Of a DNA stretch of 64,000 nucleotides, positions 4,267 to 62,003 are shown in pieces. The stretch lies in contig NIVC01000679.1 of the NCBI GenBank assembly GCA_002269645.1, positions 124,001-188,000 on the forward strand. Direction: 5' to 3'. This DNA is from Macrostomum lignano. Taxonomy: Eukaryota. Position 1 is the stretch's first letter; each line of letters starts with the position of its first letter. The notes below the pieces were generated by a model. The model did not search any database, had not been told where the DNA came from, and worked only from the letters and a program-made list of their open reading frames with translations. Position numbers and translations under genes: made by a program.

Positions 4267-4344
4267 TTCGAGCTTCTGTCTCTTGTTAAACTCCGGGCGA
4301 CACGAGATGAATTGCCGATGGAAAAAAGTAGACTGGCTCAAATT

Positions 4345-4990
4345 ACCGATTACTGACTGTAGACATGCTCAGGGTGTTCTATGACTGATTGGTGACTGTA
4401 GACATGCTCAAGGTGTTCTATGACTGATTGGTGACTGTAGACATGCTCAAGGTGTTCTATGACTGATTGCTGACTGTAGACATGCTCAGGGTGTTCTATG
4501 ATTGATTGCTGACTGTAGACATGCTCAAGGTGTTCTATGACTGATTGCTGACTGTAGACATGCTCAAGGTGTTCTATGACTGATTGGTGACTGTAGACAT
4601 GCTCAAGGAGCTCTATGACTGATTGGTGACTGTAGACATGCTCAAGGTGCTCTATGACTGATTGGTGACTGTAGACATGCTCAAGGTGTTCTATGATATG
4701 ATTGCTGGCTGTAGACATGCTCAAGGTGCTCTATGACTGATTGGTGACTGTAGACATGCTCAAGGTGCTCTATGACTGATTGGTGACTGTAGACATGCTC
4801 AAGGAGCTCTATGACTGATTGGTGACTGTAGACATGCTCAAGGTGCTCTATGACTGATTGGTGACTGTAGACATGCTCAAGGTGTTCTATGATATGATTG
4901 CTGGCTGTAGACATGCTCAAGGTGTTCTATGATTTATTGCTGGCTGTAGACATGCTCAAGATGTTCTATGATTCGTTGGTGACTATAGAC
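4345..4990. repeat. 39-bp minisatellite
   Basis: Tandem atgactgattggtgactgtagacatgctcaaggtgttct, about 16 copies. Confidence 0.95.
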
Positions 4991-5550
4991 AGGGTTGGAA
5001 TAGCCGTGCATGACTTAATTATTTACTGTAACTGATTACAGACTTTGCTATGTCGCTTAAATGGACAATAATAGCAGATCTACTTATATTATTTATTACT
5101 ACTAAAATTATACAGATTCATAACCAATTTCGATTCATTGTTTTTTCTACGTTCCCATTTTTCTAAATATTATATCATACGTTCGTAACATGACATGACT
5201 CGTTATCAGCTGCCTCCGTAACATTTGGCTTAGCAGTAAATCCATGAACGACATATATTTTCGGTTATTACATGCATAATAAAGAAGGTATATAATCATT
5301 AAACAATCGTTTCTGAATATTCTGTGCTTGTTCTTAGGGTCGTTACATTGTTTAGTAATTTATACGACGAATCAGTACATACGGTTGCAGTTTAGAGGAT
5401 AAATTTTGCTCACCGATGCAGCACGTTGCGAACAATATTAACCAATATATATTACTAGTCTGTAAGTAGTAGCTGGCCGAAGTAGCATCATGTCCACAAT
5501 TTTAAAAAATGAGGACCCAGTCCCAATAGGTACAAAAATAGTTGATCACA

Positions 5551-8500
5551 TTAACGATGCGCTCCGCCTCGAACTGCCGCAGCTCGGTACTGTCTGGGCA
5601 GACGCGGAACTGCCCGACGCCAGTAGTCTCTGTCGTCACTGCTCAGCTCAGCAACATCGCGAAGGAAGGAATTTGTATTTTTCCACTTTTTCACCTGTTT
5701 TTCCAATTTCTAAAGTAAATGAGGAAAGGTGTTGCGATCCATTATCTGCCGGCCATGATCGATTCCTTCCGAGGTAATTCGTTAGGCTTTTACACTTTCA
5801 CTGCTGCATTGTTTCATTGCTGAGGATGTCAAAAGCTTATGGGGGATTGCTCGGATGCCAAGGCTTGTATGGGGGTAAATTATTGAAATGCTGAGGCCGT
5901 CTTTCAGGGCCGATAGTGACTACTAGCAATCAGCGCCCCCCCCCTTAAGAAGGAAACAGAGAATAGAAAATATTTTTTGAATAAACTACATGTAGCTTCT
6001 GACCTCTCAGCCCTGGCGTCTCAGCAATTCTCCCCGTAAGCCTTGACATGACCGTAAATGTACTTACATACTAGTATTTACATATTTTATTTCATTTGCG
6101 TTCTAAATGAACAGAATTTCAATACCAACTATAGAAGTCTTACCTTGTCATTCAATCGGCGAAAACAGACGCATTCCGGGTCCAACAAAGGGAAAAATTG
6201 GCCTTTGTAGCGAGCAATTTTAGCCACAGGTCCGTAGCTGCAGTAGCCGCACAGCAAATCCACACCAATCATATCCATTCCGGGAACCTTTTTGATCTCG
6301 CCTCCATGTTGACCAACAATGCGTTGACCTCCAGTGAACATGTCGGCATCCAGAACGACGCGATGGATTCCGCAAATCAATCGAAGCCGAGTCGAATCCG
6401 ACAGTTTTTCTTCACACTTGCGGCACAGAATTTCGTGGTCGCTATCAATGATGACGTCACTTCCGATAGGTGTGCTATTATTAGCACGTTTTTCCTCTTC
6501 GTCTTTCAGCGCCTTTTCCTGGTAATCCAGCATCTGCAATTGAAAGCTTTTAGCAGTAGCGTATAAAGCTTATAGAAGGCTAAAAGAATTTTAACAAATT
6601 TAATTGTTATGACTTCTTCTCTAGCGGAAGACAGTGAGCCAAGACCTCTTAAGTATTTGCTCTCTTAACCGAGCGTCTTATTTCATGTTATCGTAACCTT
6701 CTTTTATATATCTTTTATATACTTTTTTGCGATTGAATTCGTCCAAACTGCAAAACCTTTCGTCCACTAACGCTTTCTTAATGGGAGCTAAATTAAGATT
6801 ATACCATAGACAACTGTGTTCACGCAAAACGGTTCATCCAGTTTGTAAAACATTTCGTCTAAACCCTTCGTCCAAACAGCTAACAGCTAAACGGAGCGAC
6901 TTTATTTGATATCACGAGATATTGAACAAAGCCTGTCAGACAGCCTAAGTTTTGGCTGTCTTTCTCTTGATCCCAAGGATATCGGCCAGTTGTTTCCAAT
7001 CGCGGCCTTCTTCAACAGCCAAGGCTAATCGCCTGCGGTCTTCGTTTGACACTGGAGGGTAGGGGCCTCGGTTCATCTTCGACTGTTTTGCCGGGTTCAG
7101 AATGGAAGATATGCGTTGCTGTAGCTGTAGTGGTAGCAAAAGCGAACAGTCAATTGGGTGTTAACTATGGTAGGAACAGTACACTCCGTCTCTAGTCTAG
7201 GGGACGAAATGTTTTACAAACTGGATGAACCTTTTTGCGTGAACACAGTTGTCTATGGTATGATCTAAATTTAGCTCCCATTAAGAAAGCATTTGTGGAC
7301 GAAAGGTTTTGCAGTTTGGACGAATTCAATCGCAAAAAAGTATATTTTCCCAGCTTGAAGCATTGCTTCTTTAGCTCATGGCTGCATGGGTGTGTGTGCA
7401 ACTGAATCGTCTATGGCCACACCCAACATTAATAATGCACAAGAACCGAACCTCAAGTAAAGAAGAGAATCAGAGAAGAGAATTCATAACTTTAATTGTC
7501 TATAATTGATTACACCTGCCCTAATGAGCAGATGTACAACCGACAGCTCAGCCGCAGCTATTGCGCGGCGCATCTGAAGGCTGCGTACGGCTGTTCAGTC
7601 AAAGGACTGGGAGATCGCCACACACCCTCAATTACCCCAGCTAATGCTGACACCTATCTTACAGCTGGGTAAACTGAAAAAAAATTAGAGTGAAGTATCT
7701 TTTCCAAGAATTGTTCCGAGTGGGTAGAGAATCGAAAACCCGACCTTCTAGTCATGAGTCCGACACTCTAAACACTAAGCTAAAACCCTCTCACTAGGCT
7801 ATAAAACCAGGGACTACTCAAAGATCCTCTTAAACCTCGCAAACCAGCCTCGTAAAAACTTTGCCATGATTTGCCTAGTTTCCCGTCTCGATGTTATAGT
7901 AGTCCCTGGCTATAACCCTCGAAGAGGCACAGCACAGAGAAAAACAAAGTTGTCCTTAAGTCAACACAGCGATTGAAACTGTCGACAAAAAACTGAAAGA
8001 TTCTCACCTTGACTACCAACTCTTCAGTCGTTAAATCAGTAACGCACGCCACTGATTGCTGCATCATTGCATCGCGCAGCTCATTTTCGCGTTCCTTGTG
8101 ACGCAGCGCCTCCTGTGTCTCAGCTACAATCACGTAATAGGCGCTGTTTTTGGCCCGGCACCGGCCTTTGGTCTGCACCATGGCGATTTCGTTTGTCACG
8201 TGACAGTAGCGCACCACCAGGTTGCAGTCCGGTATGTCTAGGCCTTCTTCCGCCATACTGGTGCAAGCAATCACTTTGTAGTCGCCTTGCCGGAAGCCCT
8301 CAATGCGAGCCTGCTGCTCAGAAGCATTAGTGCCTCCGGAAGCGTCGCTTGAAGTTGCGCCAGTCACATAGGCAGCCGGTAGATGCGGTAGTTGCTCGTT
8401 TAAGAACTCAGTAATCACCTGAGCGTAGATTTTCCGTTGTACGAAAACAATCGCTCGCGAGTCGGCTTGCGAGTTGAACTGGTTGCGAAGGATTTCCACG

Positions 8501-11500
8501 AATTTGTCCAGCGGAGGACTCGACTGCAAGCGATAAACCAGTCATCAAAATAATGGAACGTTGCATTTGGCTAAATGCACTCAATAACAAACTTACCGAA
8601 GCCTCTTTGGTGTCGCAGAATCTTTCTAGCGGCCCGATCAGGCTATGCAGTCGCTGCCGCAGTTGACTCTCCGCCTCGCAGACTGGGGGCTTAGCCAGTT
8701 CGTCCACAGCTCGAAGTTCTTTCTTGATGTAGCGCCACGCACCTCGGGGATTGTAGAACTGCGCAATCATATACGCTTGATTGAATGTGTCCAGATAACG
8801 ACTGCAGGCGAACAGATCTTTGCCCATCTCTTCGTCTGCCACTTGGTGAATTTTGTACTTAACATCGGAGCAGTAGTTTGTGTAAGTTGGAGTGCCTCTT
8901 GGCGGCGCTGATGCAATCTGGAGGGCTTCCGGCTCTGAGTTTAGCAGCGAGCTCCGATTGCTATATAGCAGCTTCTCCCCAAGGTCCATCAGCTCGTTTA
9001 AAAATTTAATGAATACGTCTTCCGAGCTCTGTTTAGCAGGTACCGAGAGGATTTGACAGTCTTGATCTGAGTTAAATTTAAATAGTGACTGAAGATAGCG
9101 CTGCACAGTGACAGGGTAGGGGCAGTCAAGATTGGCGCACAGTTGAACAAGATGCTCCTTGGCATCCTCTGGTCCCTTGGCTTTGCCGGTGCCTTGAGGT
9201 GCAGGTTTTTTGGACGTTTGGATGTTTTGGGTGTTTAATTGGCGTTTTTGTCCACTGGCAGTAGCGTCCTTACAGATCAGACACAATGGACAGTAGTGTC
9301 CTTACAGATCAGAAACAATGGACAGTAGTGTCCTTACAGATCAGACACAATGGACAGTAGTGTCCTTACAGATCAGACACAATGGACAGTAGTGTCCTTA
9401 CAGATCAGAAACAATGGACAGTAGTGTCCTTACAGATCAGAAACAATGGACAGTAGTGTCCTTACAGATCAGAAACAATGGACAGTAGTGTCCTTACAGA
9501 TCAGACACAATGGACAGTAGTGTCCCTACAGATCAGACACAATGGACAGTTGTGTTCTTACAGATCAGACACAATGGACATTGAGTGTCCTTACAGATCA
9601 GACACAATGGACAGTTGTGTTCTTACAGATCAGACACAATGGACATTGAGTGTCCTTACAGATCAGACACAATGGACATTGAGTGTCCTTACAGAGCAGA
9701 CACAATGGACATTGAGTGTCCTTACAGATCAGACACAATGAACAGATCAGGCATCGTTAGACGTGAAATAGCTTAAAAACAAGAATTTAATAATTCATGC
9801 CTCTCTAGCATTTTACCTGGACTGGCCGTTAGCCCAAGAATCCGTGGCAGGCGGGTTCCTCGACAGCTTTCCGATTGATTCTCTTGTTTCAGATCTCTCT
9901 TCAGTCGCAGGTAGTGCATCATCACTTTCATACTGGCGTGGCTCTTTGCACAATTGTGGCATTCGTCGAATATGATGAGGCGGAAATCGGAAATGTTCGC
10001 AACTGTTTTTCTATCAAGCTCGTTTAATAGAATTTGGGTGCTAATGACCAGGATGGAGTTTTTCTTCATAGACAGGGCGAATGGCTTTCGATTCTTGTTG
10101 TCTTTGCCTCCCAGGATTAGGTCAACTCTGTCCCGCCAAGGTGAGGGCAGGGCGGACCTGAACTTGTCGTATTGCTGCTGAACCAGCTGATTAGTGGATG
10201 CCAGAAGTGCCACCTAAGATATTATGGCGTTTGAAAATGGAACAAATGTTCAAACATTAAAAATGAAACATGGTTGTGTTGAATGATAAACTAATTGCTT
10301 TCAGCTCTGACCTTTGCTTGGGGCTCGGCCTTGAGCAGCCGCAGAGCGACGTACACGGCTACCAGAGTCTTCCCAGAGCCAGTGGGCGCGATCACTATCG
10401 AGTTGCGACCTAACAGGGCCGGCTCTGCCAACTCCAGCTGGTAGTCGCGGAGCTGCTGGCCGACGAGCTCGTTGTTGCCAGGCAGCTGAGACCCAGGCGG
10501 CGATGGCGGCTCCTGATTGGCTATTCGCTCAAGCTTGTAAATGTCTGAGTCGAACTTCAGTCCGTTGAGATCGAACCACCGGTTCGATTGGTCGACGACC
10601 GACTTTTTGGCCTCCTCAAACTCCGGACTCGACACTGGATTGTCGAGCTTGGGGCGAATCGCCGAGAGCTCTGAGATGAAGGGGTGGCAATGCATTGAGA
10701 CTGAAATTGATCATCCTAGAGTTCCCATTTTGGGCAAAGGCGTGTCTTCCAGCTGCTTTTATTCAGTGATTTGACCAGCTATTTCAGATGCAATGATCTG
10801 GTCTCTCACCTGACTCAAAGTTTTGGCCGAACGGTGCAATGGTGTCGAGCAGATCGACTGAGCTCTCGAGGTCAGCGATCGCAGCGAGGATGAGGTGCTC
10901 AAACCAGTCGTGAGGTGCACAATCAATGAGCTGGCGAAGCACGCAATGGACGTCTGCGGGTTGAGGCGACAAGGGGATATCTGATAAGGGATCTGGAGAT
11001 GGGATCATGTCACCATGACCATGTGACGGGATCAGGTGACAGGAATCAGAAAGACAAACAAAGGATAGCACCTCAGTAACACAGAAGCTCAACAATTCAG
11101 CAAATCTGCATCTGAGCATTCCAATACCTCAGCGAGTCTGCGAGTCTTCTGACAACTGAGCAGCCCAATAACTCAGCAACTGAGCAGCCCCAATAACTCA
11201 GCAACTGAGCAGCCCCAATAACTCAGCAACTGAGCAGCCCCAATAACTCAGCAACTGAGCAGCCCCAATAACTCAGCAACTGAGCAGCCCAATAACTCAG
11301 CAACTGAGCAGACCAATAACTCAGCAACTGAGCAGACCAATAACTCAGCAACTGAGCAGCCCCAATAACTCAGCAACTGAGCAGCCCCAATAACTCAGCA
11401 ACTGAGCAGCCCAATAACTCAGCAACTGAGCAGACCAATAACTCAGCAACTGAGCAGACCAATAACTCAGCAACTGAGCAGCCCCAATAACTCAGCAACT

Positions 11501-12268
11501 GAGCAGCCCCAATAACTCAGCAACTGAGCAGCCCCAATAACTCAGCAACTGAGCAGCCCCAATAACTCAGAATCTGAGCAGCCCACTCAGCAGCACAGCA
11601 TCTCAGCTCAGCTCACGTGCTGCACTCCCGTCGCCGTCAAGATCTTCAGAAGACTTGCTGAAGTCCTGCAGTGACTGGGCGAAGACGTCTCTCTGCAGTG
11701 CTGCGGGAAGGCTGGCCGGCACTGACAACTGCAGCCGATGAAGACGCGGCAGATCCCGCCGATTGTCCAGGTGCAGAATGTGCAGCAAGTTCTCCTGTGC
11801 TGCTGTTGCGTGGGTTCACAGGGAGATGAGTTGACATTTATTATGCTTTCTCGCATGTACAGCTCAGCATGACAGCACTTACAGCTTGTGATGCAGCGCA
11901 GAAGCTGGCTGAATGCGTCTTCGATTGGCAATTGGCCGACAACCTGCAGCAATTCGGACCAACTGCTGGGCCGATTCATGGTAATGCCTTGAGTGGGATG
12001 AGCTGCATTGGGTGGAAATTCGATCAGGAGCAGACATTGCTGAGTAACGATAATTATTGTCAATTTCAAGAAATTTATCGATTAGATGAATTACACTTTT
12101 TACAGGTTTTCAAAGTTTAGTATTGAGGCACTCACCATTTTTAATATGATTTTCGTACACAGCCACAATATTGCCAATGTCAATTAATCCTTCAATGTCG
12201 TCTTTAAATATATGGAAAAGAAGGCTAATAAGTCCTTCGAGTTCAACGCTTTCTTCGCCACCGTCCAT
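5551..12268 (-). CDS. RIG-I-like receptor A (putative 2xCARD-like N-terminus + DECH helicase + Zn-binding CTD), 999 aa; exons 12268-12136, 12002-11883, 11802-11617, 10953-10810, 10670-10312, 10213-9817, 9192-8597, 8523-8008, 6533-6144, 5709-5551
   Basis: Motifs [27 protein letters not shown]...[30 protein letters not shown]; CTD with CRKC...CGYC and a terminal KKWK motif. All ten exons have GT-AG boundaries with matching phases and total 3000 nt. Confidence 0.92.
6722..7340 (-). mobile_element. Internally deleted Tc1/mariner-superfamily (IS630-like) element with ~140-bp TIRs, in RLR-A intron 8
   Basis: 6722-~6860 is the reverse complement of ~7200-7340, and both ends are flanked by TA. Internal minus-strand [46 protein letters not shown] (7076-6945) resembles a transposase N-terminal HTH. 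Confidence 0.75.
7480..7790 (-). mobile_element. tRNA-derived SINE remnant
   Basis: Minus strand has a degenerate A box (tagcttagtgtttag) and B box (ggttttcgattct), followed by a SINE-core-like 'tcagtttacccagctgtaaga' segment. Confidence 0.5.
9262..9745. repeat. 32-bp minisatellite in RLR-A intron 6
   Basis: Tandem cttacagatcagacacaatggacagtagtgtc. Confidence 0.95.
11150..11595. repeat. 24/25-bp minisatellite in RLR-A intron 3
   Basis: Tandem gagcagccccaataactcagcaact; counterpart at 18560-18985. Confidence 0.95.
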
Positions 12269-12450
12269 GGTTGATTGATATTATTTGTTGATAGGCTCAG
12301 CCGCTTTTAGCTTATTTTTAATTAAAAACTAATTGATTAGTCCACTTGTCCGTTGTCCACTTGTCTTGCATTAACTAACTACCATAGTAATGCAAAGCAA
12401 TGCGGTTGCAGTGACAGAGCTGCCTCTATTTTATCACGACAGGACAGAGC

Positions 12451-12492
12451 GAAACCGAAAAGTGGAAAAGGGAAAGATTTCTTGGAAATTCC
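12451..12492 (+). promoter_or_regulatory. IRF/ISRE-like plus kappaB-like composite element upstream of RLR-A
   Basis: GAAACCGAAAAGTGGAAAAGGGAAAGATTTCTTGGAAATTCC, ~185-225 bp upstream of the ATG; contains a GAAANNGAAA core and GGAAATTCC. Confidence 0.5.
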
Positions 12493-12568
12493 GAGCGCCC
12501 GCGCGGAGGGTATGGCCACCAGTTCTAAAAATAGATTCTACATACCAATGTACACTGAGCGTCTACGT

Positions 12569-13557
12569 CAGGGGTCAGCAAACTTTTTACCTCGGGGGTC
12601 AGGTAAAGAATCTAGCTCATGGCTGTGGCCTGTGGGCCAGATGAGAGTGGAGAGGAGAGGGATTGGCGAGAGAGAAGTAAGAGGAGATGAGAGATGACAG
12701 GAGAGAGGAGAGGTAAGAAGCGAGATGAGAGATGCTATGAGAGAAGAGATTAGATGAGAGGGGAGAGGAGAGGAGATGAGAGGAGAGGAGAGGAGAGAAG
12801 AGGAGAGTAGAGGAGAGAGTAGAGGAGAGAAGAGGAGAGTAGAGGAGAGAGTAGAGGAGAGAAGAGGAGAGTAGAGGAGAGAGTAGAGGAGAGAAGAGGA
12901 GAGTAGAGGAGAGAGTAGAGGAGAGAAGAGGAGAGTAGAGGAGAGAGTAGAGGAGAGAAGAGGAGAGAGTAGAGGAGAGAAGACGAGAGTAGAGGAGAGA
13001 GTAGAGGAGAGAAGAGGAGAGAAGAGGAGAGAGTAGAGGAGAGAAGAGGAGAGTAGAGGAGAGAGTAGAGGAGAGAAGAGGAGAGAGTAGAGGAGAGAGT
13101 AGAGGAGAGAGTAGAGGAGAGAGTAGAGGAGAGAAGAGGAGAGTAGAGGAGAGAGTAGAGGAGAGAAGAGGAGAGAGTAGAGGAGAGAGTAGAGGAGAGA
13201 AGAGGAGAGAGTAGAGGAGAGAGTAGAGGAGAGAAGAGGAGAGTAGAGGAGAGAGTAGAGGAGAGAAGAGGAGAGAGTAGAGGAGAGAGTAGAGGAGAGA
13301 AGAGGAGAGAGTAGAGGAGAGAGTAGAGGAGAGAAGAGGAGAGAGTAGAGGAGAGAGTAGAGGAGAGAAGAGGAGAGGAGAGAGAAAAGAAGAGAAACTG
13401 AGAGGAAAGAAAAGGGAAGAGAAGAGAAGAGACAACTGAGAAGACACAAACCTTGAGCGGGCCGGATTGCCATTTTAAAGTGTCCATGGACCCTCGGGCC
13501 GGATAGGGAGGCATTGCGTGCGCATGTGACCCTCGGGCCGGAGTTTGCTGACCCCCG
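12569..13557 (+). mobile_element. Non-autonomous hAT element with internal GA-rich simple repeat
   Basis: 16-bp TIRs caggggtcagcaaact / agtttgctgacccccg (1 mismatch); perfect 8-bp TSD gtctacgt at 12561-12568 and 13558-13565. Confidence 0.9.
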
Positions 13558-14394
13558 GTCTACGTTCACTAGGAGTGGTTAGGTTTCGGGGTTGGGATTT
13601 GGGATCGGGATCGGAGTTCGGGAAAGGATTTTCGGGTTGTTTAGGGTTTTGCAAATTTTCTGAATCCCCCAAAAAGTGTCCAGCCAAACTTGTACAAGAT
13701 TTACATGTATCTGCCGTGTTGGAAATCACAGCTTTTAAATGCATTGGAAAAAGAAATCTCTGGTGACCAGACCAGCCAACTGTTCACCATGTTGGCCAAG
13801 CTGCCAACATTTCCTGGGCTCGGTGTTAAATTGTAATTGCATTACTAAGTGTAAAATGCTGAAATATTATTGAATTTTAATCCCTGGGTGTTTGTGAAGT
13901 ATAAGTGAAACAGAATCTTGCGTTTTCTTATCTCTACTGTAAGTAGACTACTATGGTTTCATACGTTATGCTAAACATCGGTGTTGTTTGGCACTCATTT
14001 TGGCGCTGAAGCCGCTATATTTTGGCGCCCTGAAGCAAAATTATCAGTTTCCATAGCAAGTCACAAGGTGAAATGGCGTATGGGGGGGGACAAGGTATTT
14101 GACATGCCCCCCTTAGCTTCTACTGGGGGATTATGTCCCCTCTGTCTCGCCTGTGGCGACGCCCATGTGATACATATCGGCCAATTTTTCTCTCCAAATC
14201 GTACATTTCACCAGTTCTTACTAAGTTGTTGTACTTCTCTATTAAAATGCATGTCGGTGATAGATAAAATTTGTCTACTTTCTTAAAAAATACCCAAGTT
14301 TCCTTGGAAAAGTTCCCATTTTTCAACACTTACAGCAATACTTGCTATTTCATTAAAATTGATCAGGTTCTTATACAATTAGTTTACACAATTA

Positions 14395-14865
14395 GGAGAG
14401 ATGTCGGGAGAGATGTAGGGAGAGATGTCGGGAAGTAGAGATAGAGAGAGGTAGGGAGAGCTAGGGAGAGAGGTAGAGATGTAGGGAGAGATGTAGGGAG
14501 AAATATAGAGAGAGGTAGAGAGGTAGGGAGAGATGTAGGGAGAAAGATAGAGAGAGGTAGAGAGAGGTAGGGAGAGGTAGGAAGGGAAAGATGTAGGGAG
14601 AGAGGTCGGGAGAGAGATAGAGAGGTAGGGAGAGATGTAGGGAGAGAGATAGGAAGAGAGGTAGGGGGTCAGGAGAGAGGTAAGGGAGAGATGTAGGGAG
14701 AGAGGTAGGAAGAGAGATAGAGAGAGGTAGGGAGAGATTTAGGAAGAGAGGTAGGGAGAGATGTAGGGAGAGAGGTAGGGAGAGAGATAGAGGTAGGTAG
14801 GGAGAGAGGTATGGAGTGAGGTAGGGAGGTAGGGAGTCAAGGGAGAGGTAGGGTAGGGAGAGAGG
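14395..14865. repeat. AG-rich degenerate simple repeat
   Basis: Variants of gagagatgtagggagagaggtagg. Confidence 0.85.
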
Positions 14866-15024
14866 AGGACCGGCACCTACATCAACCAGTTTCTACACCC
14901 TAAAGTAGCTGACTGTTCCACGACTAGATACTCATAGTCATAAGTCATGTAACTTGATTACAATCGGTGAATTCGTTACTAACAAATAAATTCTAGAGTT
15001 TAAGTGCCATTGCGCTTATTGATC

Positions 15025-15730
15025 TCTACCTATAAAAATCAAAACTCTGTCTGTCTGTCTGTCTGTCTGTCTGTGGACAAATTACTTCGCTATGGACTCC
15101 CAAACCGCTCAACCAAATTACACCAAACTTTACACCCACCCTAAACTTACTACGGAGAATGTCTTAGGCTACCTTTAAATTTCCTAGACTCAAGTCTTCC
15201 TACCTAAAAGTACAAAAAACTGCTCAAAATGCGCGATTTTTTCACTTAATCCTCCATAGCGCCGCTCTACTTCTACCGATTCTCTTCAAATTTGACACAG
15301 ATAATCTTGAACTATTTTGGCACGATCATGTAAAATTTCGAGTCTCAAAGTTAATCCTGAGCGGTGCTGTGCACTTTTAAAGTTAGGCTGTTTTTTTTCA
15401 GCGTAGCAACCACCCCAACCTCCGCCCGCCTGCCTCTCTTTCCCGATCCTGATCTGGGCCCAGATGTGCAAAATGGGTTTCAAAATTGACTAACTTTCAG
15501 CTGCCATAAGTTTGCTCCACGTAAAGCGATTGACTTCAAACCTGACACAATTCTTCATTAACCCATTCTCTATCTAAATGTAAAGTTTCAACTCTGTAAC
15601 TCAACCGAAAAAGAAACTGTAAGCATGTGAAGTTTGTCTGCTTTTTCTGTTGTTTGTGCCGCTCACTCACTCATTCCCCCAGCTCAGACGAAGGGTCAGG
15701 CGATAGGGCTCAATGTACATTGCGAATGTA
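15025..15730 (+). mobile_element. Probable non-autonomous element(s), Helitron/HINE-like 5' end with (CTGT)n
   Basis: tctacctataaaaatcaaactctgtctgtctg... start resembles Helitron-derived interspersed elements; boundaries are unclear. Confidence 0.3.
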
Positions 15731-16117
15731 CAGTGTTTTGGAATAACTTTTTAATAGCCTTCTCTGTACCCCCGCGAGTGGAGAGGCGTGGAGAGGAGAG
15801 AGTTTAGCGAGAGATTCAATTTTAAACCACTTTCCTTTCCTCTGAATAGACAAGTCCGCAGCAGTTAAACAAGGATGGCAAATCAAGGCGATGTGGGATG
15901 GTTAAAACTTTAAGGTATAAGGTACTTTAAAATTTAAATGGCCTCCTAAGAAATGCGTATTTCCATGGTTGTTTGACTGCTGCAGACTGTGGTGGTGGAG
16001 CTGGAGATATACAAATTTCTCTCAGCGCTGCTAATTGACCAGAAAGATGACGTGATTAAAGCATGGGAAATGATAACAACCATGATAGTACTACGTCCCA
16101 CAAACTGGCTTTCGAAG

Positions 16118-16506
16118 CAGGGATCGGTAGATTTTTAACTCAAAGGCCAGATAAATAATCCAGCTCATGGCTGCGGGCCAGATGAGAGTGAAAAAGAAAA
16201 GGAATAGACTATTAGAAAGAGAGGAAGGGCGAGAGGGGGGGTAAGAGAAAAGATATAAGATAACAGGAGAGACGAGTGGGGTGAGGACGAGGAGAGAGCA
16301 GAGAATATGGGAGGAGGAAGCGAGAGGAGGGGAGACAGGAGGGAGAGGAAAGAGTAGAGGAGAGAAGAGGAAGAGAGAAGAGGGGAGAGATGAGACAGAG
16401 GATCGATGAGAGAGGAGAGTAGAGAAGAGTGAGAAGAGAAGAGAGAACAGAGAGGAGATAGGAGGGGAGAGAGAGGTAGAGAGGAGTGAGAAGAGAGGAG
16501 ATAAGA

Positions 16507-16559
<53 letters not shown>

Positions 16560-17122
16560 AGGAGAAAGGAGAGATGATAGAGTAAAGGGAAGAAGAGGAG
16601 AGAGGAGGGGAGGGGAGAGAACCGAGAGGACAGGGGAAAGAGGAGAAAGGACGAGAGAGGAGAGGAAACAGGGGAGAGATTAGAGGAGAAAGAGAGATGG
16701 TACAGGAGAGAGCAGAGAGATGAGAGGAGAGAGAGGGAGAGAGAGAGTGAAAGAGAGAGGAGAGAACATGCAGAAAGAATGAGAAGAGAGAAGAGAGAAA
16801 AGATAAAAGAAGAGATAGATAAGAGAGCAAAGACGAGAGAGAAGAGAGGTGAGGGAAGAGACGATAGAAGAGAGTAGAGAGGAGAGAGGAAAGAAGAGAA
16901 GAGATGAGAGGAGAGAGAGGAGAGAGTAGAGAGGAGGGAGGAGAGGAGGGATAAAAGAATAGAAGGGAGAGGGAATAGACGAGAGAATAGGGGATAGAGG
17001 AGAGAGAGAAGAGACAGAGACGAGAGAGAGGAGAGGAAACAGAAGAGAAGATCGAAGTTTCTAAGGATCCAAGGGACATAAGGAGAGGCAGAGGCCAGAG
17101 TTTGCCTGTTCGCAGCACCCCA
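16118..17122 (+). mobile_element. Degenerate second copy of the GA-filled hAT element family
   Basis: Shares 'ccagctcatggctg...gggccagatgagagtg' with 12600-12650 and 'ggccagagtttgcc' at the right end; GA-rich interior. Confidence 0.65.
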
Positions 17123-17662
17123 GCCAACAATATAAATGTTTGCCTCAAATCCTAATTTTTCACGAATGTACTCTATTTTATGTTTAATTCAAACCTAACT
17201 ATTAACAAGTTTTTGTTTGAGTTTGACCTCAGATTTTAGAATACGAGTACATGCAAAATAGTTCCAGGGATTGAAATTCCCCGGGTTCAAAATCCGCGGG
17301 TTTCAACAGCTTGTTGTTATCTAAAACAAACACAAAAATCATGCATGAAACTACTGAACATAATTTACTCGGAGTCAGGAAGGACAATAGACAGAGTAGA
17401 GTAACACAGCACTTTGATAGGAAAGCACAAGCAGAAATGGAAATGAAATTATTGCAAGGCTGCTTTAATGTGTGTATAGAAAGAACCAGAGCAAAAAAAT
17501 AAGATTTGAAATGAAAAAGGGCAGAGACCTCAAATTCACTCTTGTACGCAATGAAATGTACATTTAGCTTGCGGGATGAACGTAGACTCTCAGTGTACAT
17601 TGGTTATATCCTAATAAAATCTATTTTTAGAACGGGCGGCTAAACCCTTCGCGCGGGCGCTT

Positions 17663-17704
17663 GGAATTTCCAAGAAATCTTTCCCTTTTCCAGTTTTCGG
17701 TTTC
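17663..17704 (-). promoter_or_regulatory. IRF/ISRE-like plus kappaB-like composite element upstream of RLR-B
   Basis: ggaatttccaagaaatctttcccttttccagttttcggtttc; reverse complement GAAACCGAAAACTGGAAAAGGGAAAGATTTCTTGGAAATTCC. Confidence 0.5.
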
Positions 17705-17883
17705 GCTCTGTCCTGTCGTGATAAAATAGAGGCAGCTCTGTCACTGCAACTGCATTGCTTTGCATTACTAAGTTAGTTAATGCAAGACAAGTGGACAACG
17801 GACAAGTGGACTAATCAATTAGTTTTTAATTAAAAATAAGCTAAAAAGCGGCTAAGCCTATCAACAAATAATATCAATCAACC

Positions 17884-20800
17884 ATGGACGGTGGCGAAGA
17901 AAGCGTTGAACTCGAAGGACTTATTAGCCTTCTTTTCCATATATTTAAAGACGACATTGAAGGATTAATTGACATTGGAAATATTGTGGCTGCGTACGAA
18001 AATCATATTAAAAATGGTGAGTGCCTCAATACTAAACTTTGAAAACCTGTAAAAAGTGTAATTTGTAATTCATCTAATCGATAAATTTCTTGAAATTTGA
18101 CAATAATTTTCGTTACTCAGCAATGTCTGCTCCTGATCGAATTTCCACCCAATGCAGCTCATCCCACTCAAGGCATTACCATGAATCGGCCCAGCAGTTG
18201 GTCCGAATTGCTGCAGGTTGTCGGCCAATTGCCAATCGAAGACGCATTCAGCCAGCTTCTGCGCTGCATCACAAGCTGTAAGTGCTGTCATGCTGAGCTG
18301 TACATGCGAGAAAGCATAATGAATGCCAACTCATCTCTCTGTGAACCCACGCAACAGCAGCACAGGAGAACTTGCTGCACATTCTGCACCTGGACAATCG
18401 GCGGGATCTGCCGCGTCTTCATCGGCTGCAATTGTCAGTGCCGGCCAGCCTTCCCGCAGCACTGCAGAGAGACGTCTTCGCCCAGTCACTGCAGGACTTC
18501 AGCAAGTCTTCTGAAGATCTTGACGGCGACGGGAGTGCAGCACGTGAGACTGAGCTGAGATGCTGTGCTGCTGAGTGGGCTGCTCAGATTCTGAGTTATT
18601 GGGCTGCTCAGTTGCTGAGTTATTGGGCTGCTCAGTTGCTGAGTTATTGGGGCTGCTCAGTTGCTGAGTTATTGGGCTGCTCAGATGCTGAGATATTGGG
18701 CTCCTCAGTTGCTGAGTTATTGGGCTCCTCAGTTGCTGAGTTATTGGGCTCCTCAGTTGCTGAGTTATTGGGCTGCTCAGTTGCTGGGTTATTGAGCTGC
18801 TCAGTTGCTGAGTTATTGGGCTGCTCAGTTGCTGGGTTATTGAGCTGCTCAGTTGCTGAGTCATTGGGGCTGCTCAGTTGCTGAGTTGTTGGGGCTGCTC
18901 AGTTGCTGAGTTGTTGGGGCTGCTCAGTTGCTGATTTATTGGGGCTGCTCAGTTGCTGAGGTATTGGGGTGCTCAGTTGCTGTGGTATTAGAATGCTCAG
19001 ATGCAGAGTTGCTGATTTGCTGAGCTTCTGTGTTACTGAGGTGCTTTCATTTATCTTTCTGATTCCTGTCACATGACCATGATCACATGACCCCATCTCC
19101 AGATCCCTTATCAGATATCCCCTCATGTCGACTCAACCCGCAGACGTCCATCGCGTGCTTCGCCAGCTCATCGATTGCGCACCTCACGACTGGTTTGAGC
19201 ACCTCATCCTCGCTGCGATCGCTGACCTCGAGAGCTCAGTCGATCTGCTTAACATCATTGCACCGTTCGGCCAAAACTTCGAGTCAGGTGAGAGACCAGA
19301 TTATTGTATCAGAAATAGCTGGTTGAATCACAGAGCAAAAGCAGCTGGAAGACTCCACCTTTGCTGAGATTGGGAACTCAAGGATGATCAATCTCAGTCT
19401 CAATGCATCGCCACCCATTCATTTCAGAGCTCCCGGCGCTTCAGCCCAAGCTCTACAACACGGTGTTGAGTCCAGAGTTCGAGGAGGCCAAAAAGTCGGT
19501 CGTCGACCAATCGAACCGGTGGTTCGATCTCAACGGACTGAAGTTCGACTCTGACACTTACAAGCTTGAGCGAATAGCCAATCAGCAGCCTCCATCGCCG
19601 CCTGGGTCTCAGCCGTCTGGCAACAACGAGCTCGTCGGCCGGCAGCTCCGCGACTACCAGCTGGAGTTGACAGAGCCGGCCCTCGATAATGCCGGCCCTC
19701 GCAACTCGATAGTGATCGCGCCCACTGGCTCTGGGAAGACTCTGGTAGCCGTGTACGTCGCTCTGCGGCTGCTCAAGGCCGAGCCCCAAGCAAAGGTGGG
19801 TGAAAAAAGCAAAACTTTGTTCTGTTATGTTTGGGTATAAGTCGGACCGCGGTTTCCATCTTTTTTGTACATTTTTTGGTTCAGGTAGCATTCCTGGCCT
19901 CTACAACGAACCTGGTGCAGCAGCAGTACGAAGAGTTCCGCTCGGTCCTGCCGCCGCCTTGGCGCAACAGCGTCTGCCCGCCGGTGCACGGTGGAGCGGA
20001 TTCGAGAAATCGAATGCCTTTCGCCCAGGCTCTGAAGGGGCACTCTATCATTGTTATGAGCACTCAGATTCTGCTGAACGCTTTGAACCGCGAACCCGAC
20101 AGCTTCAACGGCCTGGGCGTGTCGGCATTTCGGTTAATTATCTTCGACGAGTGTCACAATTGCTTAAAGGACCACCCAAGCAAAGGGGTGATGGTGCACT
20201 ATATGCGGCGAAAGAAGATTCTTGAATCGTCGGTTGAAGAGCAACAGAAAGGAAGCAAGCTGCCGCAGATTCTGGGACTGACGGCCAGTCCAGGTGAAAG
20301 CTGCTAGGAGCAACTATAGCCAGAAGATAACACTAGGGGGGGAGCCGGGAGTTTAAGTAAGGATACCAGAAACCCTCAAAGACTTAGACAGTGCAGTTTG
20401 TAACAAGGGACGCTTGAGAGATACTAGATTACCCAAACAATGCAAGGGACATTAAGAGAACACTATCGATAAAAAAACGGTACCTAGGCCAAGAAGCATC
20501 TCAGAGTCGGGGTCCACGAGAACTGCCCGCAGACGATTTTCCCGTCGAGATTTGCCCGCCGAGATTTTCCCGCGAGTGAATTGCCCTCGAGCGAATTGCC
20601 CGCCGAGTTTTTTTCCCACCGAGGTTTGTCCGCAATGCTTTTTTCCTTCAAAATCTGCCGAGTGGCTAAATACGCTCAGGAAAAAAGCATTCAACATATC
20701 ACTTTATGAACTAGAATCGACTTGCACAGTTTACTAGCATACGTGTAATAACTCGATCTATTTAGTCTACTTGAGTTAGTAGCAAAAATGGCTAACGCAA

Positions 20801-23800
20801 CGGCTTTTGGACGACTCTTACGATTCGCACGCGATGCGCTCGTGACTCAACAGTTGCATTACAGTCGCTTGAGTCTTCAAATAACATCAGAATCGCTATA
20901 ACCACTAGTGAGTTGTTCCTACGAACCTTAATATAGATGCTAGAGAACTCCAAACAGACACTACATGTATAGAATATTGGAGAACTACAACGGAGAGCAC
21001 TAGAAAACCGTAGCTATTCAAGATAATTCAAAGCCTAATTAGAGGCCATTAAATACACCCAGTAAAAGTACAACCGCACAGACTAATGCGCTAACATCTT
21101 AAAACATTCGTACAAACAAGGCACCGGCAAAGCATCGCGACTCGAGGCCGCCGTGGAGCATCTAATCAAGCTATGCGCCAATCTCGACTGCCCATATCCA
21201 GTCAGTGTGCAGCGCTGCATCAAGTCGCTCAATGAAGTGACATCAAATCCCGATTGCCAGATACACTATGCACCTGGCGATCCAACAAAAGTCGACGTGT
21301 TTATCAACATGCTAAACAGATTAATGAACGTTGGCGAGGGCCTTCTGCGCGACTATTGCGATTCACTTGAACAGTGGCAGAGTGAAGGCCTGCCAGTGTC
21401 GTCTGTGCCTCCCCGAGGCACTCCCGCGTACTTGAACTACTGCACCAATGTGAAGTACAACGTGCACAACATCACTGATCAAACCGTTTGCAAGAATATA
21501 TTAGCCTGCAGCAGGTATCTTGGCTGCTGCAACGAGGCTCAAATGATTGCGCAGTGCTTTCGCGCAGTGGACGCGTTGCGCTATTTGGAGACGGAGCTGC
21601 GAACCGAGGATGAGATGGCAAAGCCACCGGCAAGCGAGGCTGAGGAAAGACTGAGACGGCATCTGGATGACGTAATGCAACAATTGATCAGGTTCTGCGG
21701 CACAAAGGAGGCTTCGGTGAGGAACATGGTTACTGGGTCTAGGGATTTTTTAGTTCTGATAGTACGAGTATATTGAAAATGGACGCAGGATGAGTAGAGG
21801 TTTCTTTGACAGTGCAGTCATTTGGAAGTAATGGGGGTAGACAGCATAGAGGCTGATTTTTTATGCCCTTTACTCGCAAGACTCCAGACCTTCGTATTAA
21901 CCTGTAAAATGAACTCCTTCGTATGTTCCAGTCCAGCCCACCGCTGGACAAGCTAGTCGAAATTCTTCGCGAGCAATTCACCGGCCAGCCAAACAGTCGC
22001 GCTATCGTTTTTGTAAAACAGAAATTTTACGCTCGCGTTCTGGCCGATTTTGTAGACGAGTGTGCGGAACTGCGTCTTAAGGCTACCTACGTGACAGGTG
22101 CAACATCTGGCGAGTCGACGGGAGGCACCAACGCGGCTGAGCAGCGGGCCAGACTTGAAGACTTCCGACGCGGTCTCTACAAAGTGATCGCTTGTACGAG
22201 TGTCACTGAGGAGGGCCTGGACATCCCCGACTGCAACCTGGTGGTGCGCTACTGTCACGTGACTAACGAGGTCTCCATGGTGCAGACCAAGGGCCGCGGC
22301 CGGGCCAGAAATAGCGCCTATCACGTGATTGTAGCGGAAACGCAGGAATGGCTGAAAGATAAAGAACGCATCAATCAGGAGCGAGATGCCATGATGTCCC
22401 AGGCGGTGAGGACGGTTGCTGCCATGTCAGCAAGGGAACTGGAGATTCAGGTGAGAGATTAACATATACATGTAAATAATCCCGAATTGGGTCGATTTGG
22501 TATGACTCCCAGCTTTGATGCCTCCTGCTTGCAGATGCTCGAATATCAAGTAAGAATGATGAACACAGATGAGGATAACCAAGCGGCTGGAGGCGGAGAC
22601 GTCAATCAGGCCAACAACAACCGAGGTCAAGTTCTTGACAGCGATCACGACATTCTGTGCAGCAAGTGCTTCACTCAGCTGTCACATTCGACTCGACTTC
22701 GTTTAATCGGCGACATCCACCGGGTTGTTGTCGATGTCGAGATGTTCGCCAGCGGCGGCCGACTTCGCGGCCAAGCTGGCGGCGAAGCCAAAAGGGTGCC
22801 CGGCGTGGAAGTAATTGGCGTTGATCTAGTGTGCGACAGCTGCGGCTTCAAGGTTGCTAAGGTTGTAAGCTACGGCAGACTGTTCTTCCCGCTGCTGACC
22901 GTCGAGGCCGTGCTGTTTCGTCGGTCTATTACAATGGTATGGAACTGCCTGTAGAAATTAGAAGTTTGAGTTGCTACTGTTGCTGTGGATATGATTGGAG
23001 GAGGGTGCGACAGGACAGAAGATTGGGATGGATGGGGAAAGAAGGAGTTAGAGAAGAAAGCAGATGGAGAGTAAATTGATGAGAGTGGACAAGCTTCTTG
23101 TTGATCTCAGCTAAGGGATAAATGAATTGCCCGATGAAAACGGTATCTAAGCTAAGAAGCGTACCAGAGTCACTTGCGTCGCCTTACAGTCGTTGCAGGT
23201 AACACAAAATAGGAAAGAAATGACTCTAGACGACTCTAAAACGATGAGATGAAATGGTTAAAGTCACCAAAAATTCGTCACCAAAGAAGTCACGAAGTGT
23301 TTTGTTGTCTGTGACTCTGAAATCGACTCTGGTGCCGTAAAGAGTCGTATTTGAGGCGTGCTAAAGTCGCTGTAGTCACTGAGTTGTGTTTAAAGCGCAT
23401 TTGCGTCGCTTGATGAATTGAGTCGTATCTGTAGCAAAAGTTATAACGCCAACTCAACGATTCTTGGACAATTTTTTCATGATTTACGCTTTTGCGACGC
23501 AAGTCGCCTCCGTCGCATTTGACGCGTTTGAGTCGTTAAAAAGTCACAAGAGTCGCCCAGAGTCACAAGTAAAGTTGTTTGCAACGACTTTTTAGCGATT
23601 CTTGTCACGGTACCGTTTTCAACGGGTTGAGACTTGAGAGCGCACGCTGTCATTTTATTAGAGCAAATGCAGGTACGGAATACTCGTGAAATTCTCACTA
23701 GATAGTCAGCTTTATCAGTAGCCTGGCAACCCTCATTACCACATGCAGGAAACGGAAAGGCCGGCAAGAAAGTGGAAAGCAACAGAGAGTTTTCTTCGGC

Positions 23801-23889
23801 CAGTAGCTCGCCTGTCGCAGGAGGACAAAAACCTGTGGCGCAGACACGTGCCTCGCCTACCGGAGCATTATAGACCGTACTGGAACTAA
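17884..23889 (+). CDS. RIG-I-like receptor B, 1005 aa; exons 17884-18016, 18158-18277, 18358-18543, 19144-19287, 19428-19795, 19885-20293, 21121-21716, 21932-22450, 22535-22936, 23749-23889
   Basis: Motifs [27 protein letters not shown]...[26 protein letters not shown]; CTD with CSKC...CDSC and a terminal RKWK motif. Ten exons with the same intron positions and phases as RLR-A, total 3018 nt. Confidence 0.92.
18560..18985. repeat. 24/25-bp minisatellite in RLR-B intron 3
   Basis: Tandem ctcagttgctgagttattggggctg, more degenerate than the RLR-A copy. Confidence 0.95.
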
Positions 23890-24733
23890 TTATCTGATAT
23901 GATATAGTTCGCGTCAGTCAATATATTAACTTGAAATTTACTCAGACCAGCGACAAAGATAACATCTGTGCGAGTAGTTAACACAGAATGACTCAAGTAT
24001 AAACATGTAGTGTTGAAACGAGATCCACTTGGTTTCTTAGAAAATCTTTTGAAGGCTGTTCTGTGAAATTTTATGTTTCTAAAAAACGACAGGCGTATCA
24101 CTGATTTGTGGTAAAAAATTTTCCAAGTGTTAAATTAGGTCATTCATGACTGCAAAAAATTAAAAAATCAAGTAGCTTGTATTAGTGAGCTAAGATTAAA
24201 TCTGTTTACATTATCTGTAGAAAATTAACATTCTTTTTAACCCTTTTAAATCGCATATTCAGTAAATTGCTTTGCTAAGCAACTCTCTTGAAATTGTTAC
24301 GAACGGTGTTGTGTTATTTTAGATTTTAAATAAATAAATGAGCAACAACTCCGTTAATAACTACATTTGCAGTACACATAAGAAGAGCACTATATATCAG
24401 TACTGAACATGTGTTTTTATTAAAGTATATTTTGCTATTTACCAAAGTATTGTAAAATGCATAGTACTGCCGTTATCTGAACATAACCTAATAATAACAG
24501 CAAGAACTGGTTGGATCAAGATTACCGGTAGGCATTAAATTTCAACGAAACATGCCAATAATTATTAGCAGTAAGTTATAGGTAGAATCTGCCTCTCGGC
24601 TTCATCTAATTTGGGTAGAATCAGTCTCCCAAGCTATTAAAAATAGAACTTTCAAATTGAAAAATCATAATCTGTACAATAGTCAATGAGGCTTGGTCAA
24701 AACCGTTGTTATGACGACACAAAACCACTGAAA

Positions 24734-25745
24734 TTATTTTCTACTACTTGTAGTAGACCTTCGATATCTGGCAGCGTCACTTCTGGACGGTGGGCTACGG
24801 CTACGGCTACGATTTCTTCGACGATTTGGATTAGGAACTTGTCGATCCTTGCTGCCCGGATGTCCGTCGCGGCTACGGCTACGGCTTCGGCTACGGCTAT
24901 GACTATAATTCTTTCTACGATTCGTGCTAGCGACTTGTCGATCCTTGCTACCCGGATGTCCATCGCGGCTACGGCTACGGCTATGACTATAATTCTTTCT
25001 ACGATTCGTGCTAGCGACTTGTCGATCCTTGCTACCCGGATGTCCGTCGCGGCTACCCGGATGTCCGTCGCGGCTACCCGGATGTCCGTCGCGGCTACCC
25101 GATGTCCGTCGCGGCTACCCGGATGTCCGTCGCGGCTACCCGAATGTCCGTCGCGGCTACCCGGATGTCCGTTACGGCTACGGCTACGATCAGACGGTTG
25201 GTAATCCGGATAATTTGGATCGATTTTTTCGCGCTTCACTCGCACAGGAGCGGCTGAGCCTCCAGGAGCGGCGGGCGGCGAGCGCCGACGGCGAGGCGGA
25301 CTCAAATCGCCGTCATGTCCAACTCAGGCGCGCAGCCGCGCTCCTTAAGCCGCTGCTTCACCGGATCATCGTCCGGTTTAATCAGCTCCTTCACCTTGTA
25401 GCTTTCCACGTGATTAACCCGCAGAGTGCGACCCACAACTCGGGCTCCGTTGAGGTTGTCGCATGCCAGCACGGTTGATCGCTGATCTTCGTAGCACAGG
25501 AAAGCGAAGCCTTTGCTCTTGCCAGTGGACTGGTCCCGCACCAGGTTGACGTTGACCACTTCGCCGTATTGGGAGAACACGCAGATTACGTCGCCTTCGG
25601 TGAGTTCATAGTCCAAGCCGCCAATGTAGATCCAAGCGGAGTCTTTGAACATCGAGTGCCAGGAGCTTTGGGTGTTCGCCGTGCCCAGTTGGAGCTCCTT
25701 CTCAGTCATCAGGCGCTGATTGCGGACTTGGGTTAATGGGTTCAT
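24734..25745 (-). CDS. RBMX2: RBMX2/Snu17/Ist3 (RES complex RRM protein with RS-rich tail), intronless, with two apparent 1-nt deletions (~25316, ~25100)
   Basis: MNPLTQV...SWHSMFKDSAWIYIGGLDYELTEGDVICVFSQYGE...KSKGFAFLCYEDQRSTVLACDNLNG is diagnostic. Restoring 2 nt gives a 338-codon ORF with an SRSRSR / GHPGSRD tail ending at TAA 24734-24736. Confidence 0.9.
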
Positions 25746-27108: not shown

Positions 27109-27426
27109 TCAGGCGTCCGCAGTCAAGTCCCAATAGTCCATAGTCGTCAGTTTTCCAGACTTCATCTCCCGGAAGAAAAAGCGGTACCACCCAGTACCTA
27201 GGGCTTGCACTGCCAAGGCATATTCGCCCTCGCAAACCGTGACATTCTCGGGGTACATATAACCCGGAGGCGGCCGCGCAAAGACCTCGTTCTTGAACGC
27301 TGCAAAGAGAGAAGACGCAGCCCATTAGTACCCGATCAGCTTCTTAATAAACAAAAAGCCCAATAATTGCTTACCGTCTCTCACATATCGCTCAGCTAGC
27401 TCTTTCTTTCGGGCGGATTTGTCCAT
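27109..27426 (-). CDS. Intact two-exon 80-aa ORF of unknown function inside the Maverick; exons 27426-27375, 27299-27109
   Basis: MDKSARKKELAERYVRD-A-FKNEVFARPPPGYMYPENVTVCEGEYALAVQALGTGWYRFFFREMKSGKLTTMDYWDLTADA*. The 75-nt intron has G|gtaag, a ctaat branch point and ttctctctttgcag, and the phases match. Confidence 0.6.
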
Positions 27427-32472: not shown

Positions 32473-32529
32473 CTGCGGCAGAAATAAGTGACAAGTAGTA
32501 TATAGAGTTTTTATGTGACAATGCCGATG

Positions 32530-60563: not shown

Positions 60564-62003
<1,440 letters not shown>

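Follow-up and report, generated by a model that had tools for sequence, protein, structure and literature searches.

Partial homogenisation of a head-to-head pair of RIG-I-like receptor genes in Macrostomum lignano

How can two neighbouring receptor genes be nearly the same over their first third and deeply different over the rest? This question is raised by two genes for RIG-I-like receptors (RLRs) of the flatworm Macrostomum lignano, located in a 64,000-nucleotide stretch of contig NIVC01000679.1 (positions 124,001 to 188,000 of the forward strand), which is called "the window" here and whose own numbering is used below. Both genes are intact, consist of 10 exons and are arranged head-to-head: gene A lies on the minus strand at 5551-12268 and gene B on the plus strand at 17884-23889. 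An earlier reading of the letters by a model, hereafter the original prediction, had taken them for divergently oriented RLR paralogs with identical exon structure, an old duplication whose 5′ arms are kept alike by gene conversion. Judging from the sequences, an ancient inverted duplication with recurrent conversion of the 5′ arms and diverged sensor halves is quite probably the correct account, while the nature and the meaning of the shared part turn out to be less clear.

Two receptor genes alike in their 5′ third

The features on which the argument depends are as follows.

5551..12268, minus strand: gene A (BOX15_Mlig021912g3), RLR of 998/999 aa, annotated protein P0125
12268-12136, 12002-11883, 11802(11799)-11617, 10953-10810, 10670-10312, 10213-9817, 9192-8597, 8523-8008, 6533-6144, 5709-5551, minus strand: coding exons 1–10 of gene A
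17884..23889, plus strand: gene B (BOX15_Mlig016200g3), RLR of 1004 aa, annotated protein P0122
17884-18016, 18158-18277, 18361-18543, 19144-19287, 19428-19795, 19885-20293, 21121-21716, 21932-22450, 22535-22936, 23749-23889, plus strand: coding exons 1–10 of gene B
10310..12568, minus strand: arm A, about 300 bp upstream of the ATG with exons 1–5 and introns 1–4 of gene A
17580..19797, plus strand: arm B, about 305 bp upstream of the ATG with exons 1–5 and introns 1–4 of gene B
5551..10213, minus strand: sensor half A (exons 6–10), the rest of Hel1, Hel2i, Hel2, the pincer and the C-terminal domain (CTD) with two CxxC pairs
19885..23889, plus strand: sensor half B (exons 6–10), the diverged counterpart of sensor half A

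The two halves of the genes behave very differently. Amino acid identity between A and B is 97.7, 100, 100, 93.8, and 86.2% in exons 1–5, and 56.6, 52.3, 66.5, 50.0, and 52.2% in exons 6–10, so that the sensor halves of ~730 residues are about 55% identical. Synonymous divergence (dS, by the Nei-Gojobori method) is 0.04, 0, 0.02, 0.14, and 0.09 in exons 1–5 against 2.1, 2.1, 1.3, and 1.4 in exons 6–9 and saturation in exon 10; uniform dS along the genes, which the original prediction had named as an outcome speaking against it, is thus not what is found. Identity is 91–99% in the arms versus 62–70% in exons 6–9 and 52% in exon 10, with unalignable introns. A maximum chi-square analysis places the main breakpoint at nucleotide 950 of the coding sequence, next to the exon 5/6 junction at 948, with a chi-square of 356 that was reached by none of 2000 permutations (top permuted value, 23.9); a second breakpoint within exon 4 was reached by 3 of 2000. 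As the dS of exons 6–10 is about 50–100 times the divergence between the homeologous locus copies described below, an old duplication, as had been predicted, is supported by these synonymous sites.

The similar parts form an inverted repeat, in which 12568-10310 matches 17580-19797 with 91.4% identity over 2288 columns, 98 mismatches and 19 gap openings (blastn). The gaps are mostly within a minisatellite in intron 3, and the best sub-arm, 11612-12066 versus 18094-18548, is 99% identical. In a multiple alignment, the similarity starts about 305 bp upstream of the ATG and stops at the exon-5 donor, past which just vestigial similarity over the first ~25 nt of intron 5 is left and the introns are unalignable. 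Both limits are abrupt and coincide among all copies, the 3′ limit being within 2–3 nt of the splice donor in each. The predicted exon structure, the homogenised exons 1–5 with introns 1–4 and the loss of alignable introns beyond them are therefore borne out by the models, the arms and the dS contrast. The arms that had been drawn inward to 12510 and 17645 do exist, and they reach slightly further, to 12568 and 17580.

The module had also been described as nearly identical, which does not hold throughout. Between W_A and W_B, the two genes of the window, the differences amount to 0.8% in intron 1, 3.8% in intron 2, 13.7% in intron 4, and 7.0% in exon 5, and the proximal block (from -305 to exon 3) differs by 2.2% versus 8.3% in the distal block (from the end of intron 3 to exon 5; Fisher p = 1.6e-8). 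Divergence within the module is lowest in exons 1–3 and rises toward both edges. Such a gradient fits a domain of conversion whose edges would be converted less often than its interior.

The gene models behind these figures were built as spliced models with annotated homologs as guides (P0002 for gene A). All introns are of the GT-AG type, and exon lengths differ between A and B by multiples of 3 only; therefore, the intron phases are the same. Model B shows no differences from P0122 (1004 aa), and model A differs from P0125 (998 aa) by one residue, which comes from the choice of a NAGNAG acceptor at exon 3. This tandem CAGCAG acceptor, at 11799-11802 in A and 18358-18361 in B, permits one-residue protein variants: the annotation takes the downstream AG in the window copies, and P0002 has an extra Thr there.

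Existing annotation calls both genes just hypothetical protein or RNA helicase, and their assignment to RLRs comes from the following features. Helicase motifs I, II, III, and VI are found in both proteins (GSGKT, DECH, TASPG, and QTKGR(G/C)RA), and the Pfam domains DEAD, ResIII, and Helicase_C are above cut-off in both. The Hel2i domain (RIG-I_C, PF18119; cut-off, 23.2 bits) scores 27.6 bits in B and, just below the cut-off, 22.6 bits in A, and the Hel2i region of A and B aligns to the structures of LGP2, MDA5, and RIG-I. RIG-I_C-RD (PF11648; cut-off, 25.6 bits) reaches 27.7 bits in A and 39.1 bits in B, and the two CxxC pairs in each CTD would make up a putative four-cysteine zinc site. PDB matches start at residue ~264 in both proteins, with E values of 1e-61 to 1e-72 to LGP2, MDA5, and RIG-I and with no clear preference; because A and B are about equally distant from the three, a lineage-specific duplication is indicated. 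The CTD alone has no significant match in the PDB by phmmer, and neither CTD is assignable as RIG-I-, MDA5-, or LGP2-like, nor is a ligand preference inferable from it. Both genes look functional and under purifying selection, considering their intact open reading frames (ORFs), motifs and CxxC pairs and the ratio of nonsynonymous to synonymous divergence (dN/dS), which is 0.17–0.26 between A and B in exons 6–9.

Locus copies and mosaics of conversion tracts

The same head-to-head arrangement is found on two further contigs. In NIVC01004410 (L001), genes A and B encode P0126 and P0001, respectively. In NIVC01004216 (L002), gene A encodes P0002, and gene B is represented by exons 1–3 only as the contig end cuts the remainder. 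The copies are called W_A and W_B in the window, L1_A and L1_B at L001, and L2_A and L2_B at L002, and all were drawn from one PacBio-based assembly, GCA_002269645.1 (Mlig_3_7). M. lignano is a hidden polyploid (PMC5704211), and three homeologous subgenomes S, L1, and L2 with a single-nucleotide divergence of 1.9–2.4% have been reported for Mlig_3_7 (PMC10733133). The three loci are most likely homeologous subgenome copies; dS between loci in exons 6–9 of orthologous copies is 0.010–0.031, consistent with subgenome divergence.

In the arms, a different picture emerges. Among the three A copies, dS of exons 4–5 is 0.09–0.19, and between A and B of one locus it is 0.017 at L001 and 0.103 in the window. 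Over the distal block, A and B differ by 0.9% at L001 and by 8.3% in the window, and L2_A differs from B-type sequences by 10–11% (22% in intron 4). Each A copy has its own mosaic. Of the 117 informative distal sites of L1_A, 114 are B-type, and just two A-specific sites survive, ~30 bp ahead of the exon-5 donor. In W_A, all of exons 1–3 is B-type, with 0–1 differences in 660 nt from L1_B and L2_B, as is the 3′ end of exon 5. L2_A has B-type sequence over the 5′ half of exon 5 and many A-specific or private variants elsewhere. A-specific sites are retained at the outer edges, including the upstream one, in all A copies. To explain these patterns, at least four independent tracts would be required, mostly in the direction from B to A, which would have arisen while 1–3% divergence accumulated. 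Furthermore, even L2_A, the least converted copy, is still far closer to B in the module than in exons 6–10; therefore, older rounds of exchange precede the split of the loci. The repeated, independent conversion is seen among three loci of one polyploid genome rather than among separate species. Together with the introns being as similar as the exons and with the uneven divergence of the module, these differing mosaics agree with the proposal that the 5′ arms are kept alike by gene conversion.

The elements around and between the arms that enter into the mechanism are listed here.

12569..17579, no strand: spacer between the arms, 5.0 kb, non-palindromic, largely polypurine (GA-rich) simple repeats
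12650-13384, 14395-14828, 16322-17037: polypurine (GA-rich) simple repeats of the spacer, all three purine-rich on the plus strand
11153..11585, minus strand: intron-3 minisatellite of gene A, 25-nt unit, 17.6 copies
18576..19010, plus strand: intron-3 minisatellite of gene B, 24-nt unit, 17.9 copies
12479-12492, minus strand: upstream motif GGAATTTCCAAGAA, about 210 bp upstream of the ATG of gene A
17663-17676, plus strand: its twin upstream of gene B

The pair would have originated by an ancient inverted duplication, giving two head-to-head RLR genes that were both kept functional by purifying selection. On the evidence of the sequence comparison, the inner 2.2–2.3 kb of each copy acts as an arm of a palindrome around the 5-kb spacer, and sequence passes again and again from arm to arm by non-allelic gene conversion within the chromosome, mostly from B to A, in tracts of roughly 100 bp to at least 750 bp. 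The limits stay fixed since loss of homology beyond them stops heteroduplex formation; conversion does not pass about -305 bp or the exon-5 donor because the copies beyond are too diverged to pair. As an outcome, both proteins carry the same orphan N-terminus and start of the helicase, and both genes have the same proximal promoter. In a functional step that we only infer, two RNA sensors with different recognition halves would be coupled to the same partner and the same regulation.

The minisatellite in intron 3 sits between the strongly homogenised proximal block (exons 1–3) and the more diverged distal block (exons 4–5), and it may serve as a start or end point of conversion tracts. From the exon coordinates, intron 3 is 600 nt long in W_B, 663 in W_A, 838 in L1_A, 1220 in L1_B, and 1242 in L2_A. 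In the shared upstream region, GGAATTTCCAAGAA is invariant in 6/6 gene copies and has 2 exact matches in the window versus 0.06 expected. It holds a half that we take to be kappaB-like, GGAATTTCC, and presumably a GAS/STAT-like element, TTCNNNGAA.

Several points weigh against this mechanism or its details. The homeology of the three loci is an assumption, and 36% of the assembly length is reportedly in subgenome-chimeric scaffolds (PMC10733133); fine mosaics among six near-identical arms could partly be artefacts of consensus or polishing. The kinship of the loci is discordant across the spacer: in A-side unique sequence, the window differs from L001 at 1/321 positions and from L002 at 11/314, and in B-side unique sequence, it differs from L002 at 0/317 and from L001 at 24/317. 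Either homeolog recombination within the spacer or a chimeric scaffold would explain this. There is no excess of GC content at third codon positions of the kind left by long-term biased conversion, the values being 0.64 in exons 1–5 versus 0.56 (A) and 0.63 (B) in exons 6–10. Finally, the boundary itself could stem from early selection for divergence of the sensors, or from a one-off swap of the 5′ part that was maintained by later conversion.

The spacer sequences upstream of A and upstream of B are unrelated to one another, yet conserved between loci. The polypurine tract at 12650-13384 is CT-rich in the orientation of A, and that at 16322-17037 is GA-rich in the orientation of B; these repeats yield very long spurious ORFs of up to 365 codons.

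There is a more complicated case on a fourth contig, NIVC01001153.1 (L004), where a B-type gene is represented by exons 7–10 only (P0121, 484 aa). This truncated gene is preceded by an inverted copy of the region normally found after gene B (24059-34021 of the window), which gives a large palindrome flanked on either side by genes for RRM proteins (positions 1-8623 and 9321-22568 of L004; 20639-36283 of the window). Either the copy is genuine and was rearranged or truncated, or the palindrome is an artefact of long-read assembly.

The shared module and rival accounts of its likeness

What is it that the two genes share? The module codes for residues 1 to ~316, that is, a 264-residue N-terminus and the start of Hel1 through motif I, ending ~20 residues past this motif (GSGKT at residue 291 in A and 294 in B). 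As the first ~50 helicase residues with motif I are included, it is not purely a signalling module. That it is a signalling module may be inferred by analogy with the domain order of RIG-I and MDA5. The original prediction had gone further in regarding it as a pair of signalling CARDs, and this premise did not find support. The N-terminus gives no Pfam CARD and no Pfam match of any kind at E<=10, and no sequence match in the PDB at E<=10; a phmmer search over 1.84 billion representatives returns its own cluster only. A word-indexed protein search at E<=10 gave no match at all and is uninformative, as it missed even P0001 and P0002, in which this N-terminus is present at 94–99% identity. By hhalign, its comparison with RLR tandem CARDs has a probability of 0.6%, and profile comparison with the N-termini of the other Macrostomum RLR family (P0003/P0004) gives 1.8%, below significance. 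AlphaFold2 models have a mean confidence (pLDDT) of 39.2 for the N-terminus alone and 41.6 with a 7-row alignment, too low for fold assignment, and a Foldseek search of the PDB with the better model returns nothing at E<=0.001, which is uninformative given the quality of the model. At this pLDDT of 39–42, the N-terminus is predicted to be all-helical, with about 12 helices in two groups of six.

Besides these helices, two further weak leads point toward a death-fold such as CARDs. Proteins of the P0003/P0004 family have a sub-threshold CARD_2 match in the equivalent position (E 0.018; 26% against CARDs by hhalign, below significance), and the sequence DWFEHLI of A and B resembles YWFEHLI in CARD2 of hagfish RIG-I by eye. 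The label "CARDs" for the module is nevertheless unsupported. A common adaptor interface, a common regulon, and differing ligand preferences of the two sensors, which had been proposed alongside, are likewise putative.

One reading gives the sharing a meaning. The N-terminus would be a lineage-specific non-CARD, or a death-fold output domain diverged beyond recognition, whose identity on both sensors is selected because they engage the same fast-evolving adaptor or co-oligomerise through their N-termini. We consider this unlikely. If it were true, conversion would let the output interface evolve as a unit while the sensors diversify, a mirror image of classical paired receptors.

Or the sharing is a neutral by-product: close, inverted and still similar segments recombine, the N-terminus and promoter are shared without adaptive meaning, and the boundary is historical, fixed solely by the homology lost beyond it. 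This reading bears on the meaning and not on the mechanism, and is compatible with the conversion account favoured here; we give it a substantial chance, somewhat short of even. In L2_A, where conversion lapsed, the N-terminus drifts, with 7 nonsynonymous versus 4 synonymous changes in exons 1–3. The dN/dS of the module, about 0.3–0.7, indicates moderate constraint and exceeds the value of about 0.2 in the sensor half; in SIGLEC11/16, too, constraint on the converted region was noted to be relaxed (PMC5701461). The boundaries also coincide with the end of alignable sequence. Against pure neutrality, the dN/dS is below 1, indels are multiples of 3, and the N-terminal frame is intact in the five arms that hold the whole module, the three exons of L2_B being without stops or frameshifts. 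In addition, a 3′ boundary within 2–3 nt of the splice donor in every copy would have to be a coincidence.

The remaining rivals concern the mechanism, and each was rejected. A single recent chimeric event, in which the 5′ 2.2 kb of one gene was pasted once over that of the other with no later exchange, could explain why both boundaries are sharp and the same at three loci, as tract limits would then predate the split of the loci. However, neutral divergence within the module of one and the same pair ranges from 0–1% (intron 1) to 14–22% (intron 4), A copies of loci that are 1–3% apart differ by the dS values of exons 4–5 given above, and the whole distal block is B-type in L1_A but not in W_A or L2_A. 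Unless the mosaics are artefacts of assembly, these heterogeneous divergences and differing tracts do not look like one event, and we regard a single event, which the original prediction had itself named as a possible refutation, as very improbable.

Slightly less probable still is an artefact, in which chimerism or collapse during PacBio assembly created the palindrome or made its arms look alike. Many chimeric scaffolds are reported for this assembly, and L004 shows a suspicious, perfect-looking palindromic rearrangement around its truncated B. In the case of the pair, however, the arms are 91% rather than 100% identical and contain indels, the outer halves are deeply diverged yet intact and spliceable, the annotated proteins match the models, and the same architecture recurs on three contigs and in an older, independent annotation, on which grounds a collapse was rejected. 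This annotation, P0128 (UniRef A0A1I8H5D6), joins antisense-B ORFs to gene A and thereby records the same adjacency in another gene set. P0128 maps to 22840-19553, 12202-5554, and 2543-2346, all on the minus strand, as a 1623-aa chimera that also takes in a downstream gene; the fusion is an error of annotation, to which the abundance of open frames in the GC-rich and repeat-rich sequence gave rise.

Strong purifying selection on a constrained N-terminus, without any exchange of sequence, would suit the 98–100% protein identity of exons 1–3 but is hardly credible and was rejected on dS and intron identity, as synonymous sites, introns and the 305 bp of non-coding upstream DNA are as alike as the exons, so that selection on the protein is not the cause of the 5′ similarity, and as the N-terminus tolerates change in L2_A.

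Precedents, significance and surroundings of the locus

The analogy to paired immune receptors in the original prediction turned out to be apt. By comparison of arrangements, the closest precedent is SIGLEC11/SIGLEC16, with the roles of the two halves reversed. These genes are also head-to-head, about 9 kb apart, and ~3 kb of upstream sequence with the N-terminal exons has been homogenised by repeated, lineage-specific conversion, outside this region, the two genes differ, and its 3′ limit is close to the end of an exon without being marked by a motif (PMC5701461). Like SIGLEC11/16, which belong with SIGLEC5/14 to the paired receptors of primates, the flatworm genes are adjacent inverted paralogs with homogenised upstream sequence and 5′ exons and a diverged remainder. 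In Siglecs, however, it is the ligand-binding ectodomain that has been homogenised and the signalling tail, inhibitory versus activating, that has diverged, whereas in the flatworm pair the ligand-sensing helicase and CTD have diverged and the N-terminal, presumed output, module is homogenised. The shared part is not the ligand-binding one as in the Siglec pair: it lies upstream of Hel2i, Hel2, and CTD, by which RLRs bind RNA, and excludes all three. The genes encode cytosolic RNA helicases and not Ig-type lectins. The flatworm pair is thus SIGLEC11/16-like in genetics and is not a member of that class in the functional sense.

Other systems resemble the pair in part. The ampliconic palindromes of the human Y chromosome have long arms of >99.9% identity, in which whole genes are homogenised by arm-to-arm conversion. 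Common to both are inverted repeats around a unique spacer and homogenisation by intrachromosomal conversion, but the flatworm arms are 2.2 kb long, 78–100% identical by segment, and cover only the 5′ third of two ancient paralogs. Vertebrate RIG-I and MDA5 are likewise two RLR paralogs with diverged helicase and CTD, an N-terminal module before the helicase, and, from the helicase on, the same domain order. Unlike the flatworm pair, RIG-I and MDA5 are not linked in vertebrates and have tandem CARDs that have diverged without homogenisation, and the flatworm N-terminus is not detectable as a CARD. The plant NLR pairs RRS1/RPS4 and RGA4/RGA5, each a sensor with a helper, are transcribed from one bidirectional promoter and differ throughout their length. 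They are divergently transcribed immune receptor pairs as well, but each flatworm gene has its own copy of the promoter, and what is shared is a homogenised coding module.

In the literature, no paper naming Mlig016200 or Mlig021912 was found, nor any on conversion between RLR paralogs; RLRs of M. lignano figure there solely as tips of an RLR tree (PMC8476169). Partial homogenisation, known from other immune receptor pairs, would thus appear to be new for the RLR family.

RLRs are central antiviral sensors, and their signalling in invertebrates is largely obscure. The locus offers a natural experiment: the RNA-recognition halves of the two sensors have diverged to dS >1, and a common N-terminal module and a common proximal promoter are imposed on both. 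Should this sharing have a function, the module would lead toward the output pathway of flatworm RLRs, and the pair would demonstrate that an output interface can be kept unchanged by partial concerted evolution as the sensors diversify. Should it be neutral, the locus would still provide a clean, datable instance of conversion that recurs within fixed limits in a neopolyploid genome, and would call for care when these genes are annotated or reads are mapped to them. Both RNA interference and transgenesis can be applied in M. lignano.

Downstream of gene B, the window contains an RRM-domain gene (25302-25760, minus strand) and an RNase P p30 gene (about 30439-32448, minus strand), and both neighbours also follow B on L001 and L004. 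A 21-nt tandem repeat at 24840-25200 beside the RRM-domain gene was read as RGYPDV repeats by an older gene model. Far from the pair, a long ORF at 60567-61895 on the minus strand has a beta-tubulin signature, recognised by eye.

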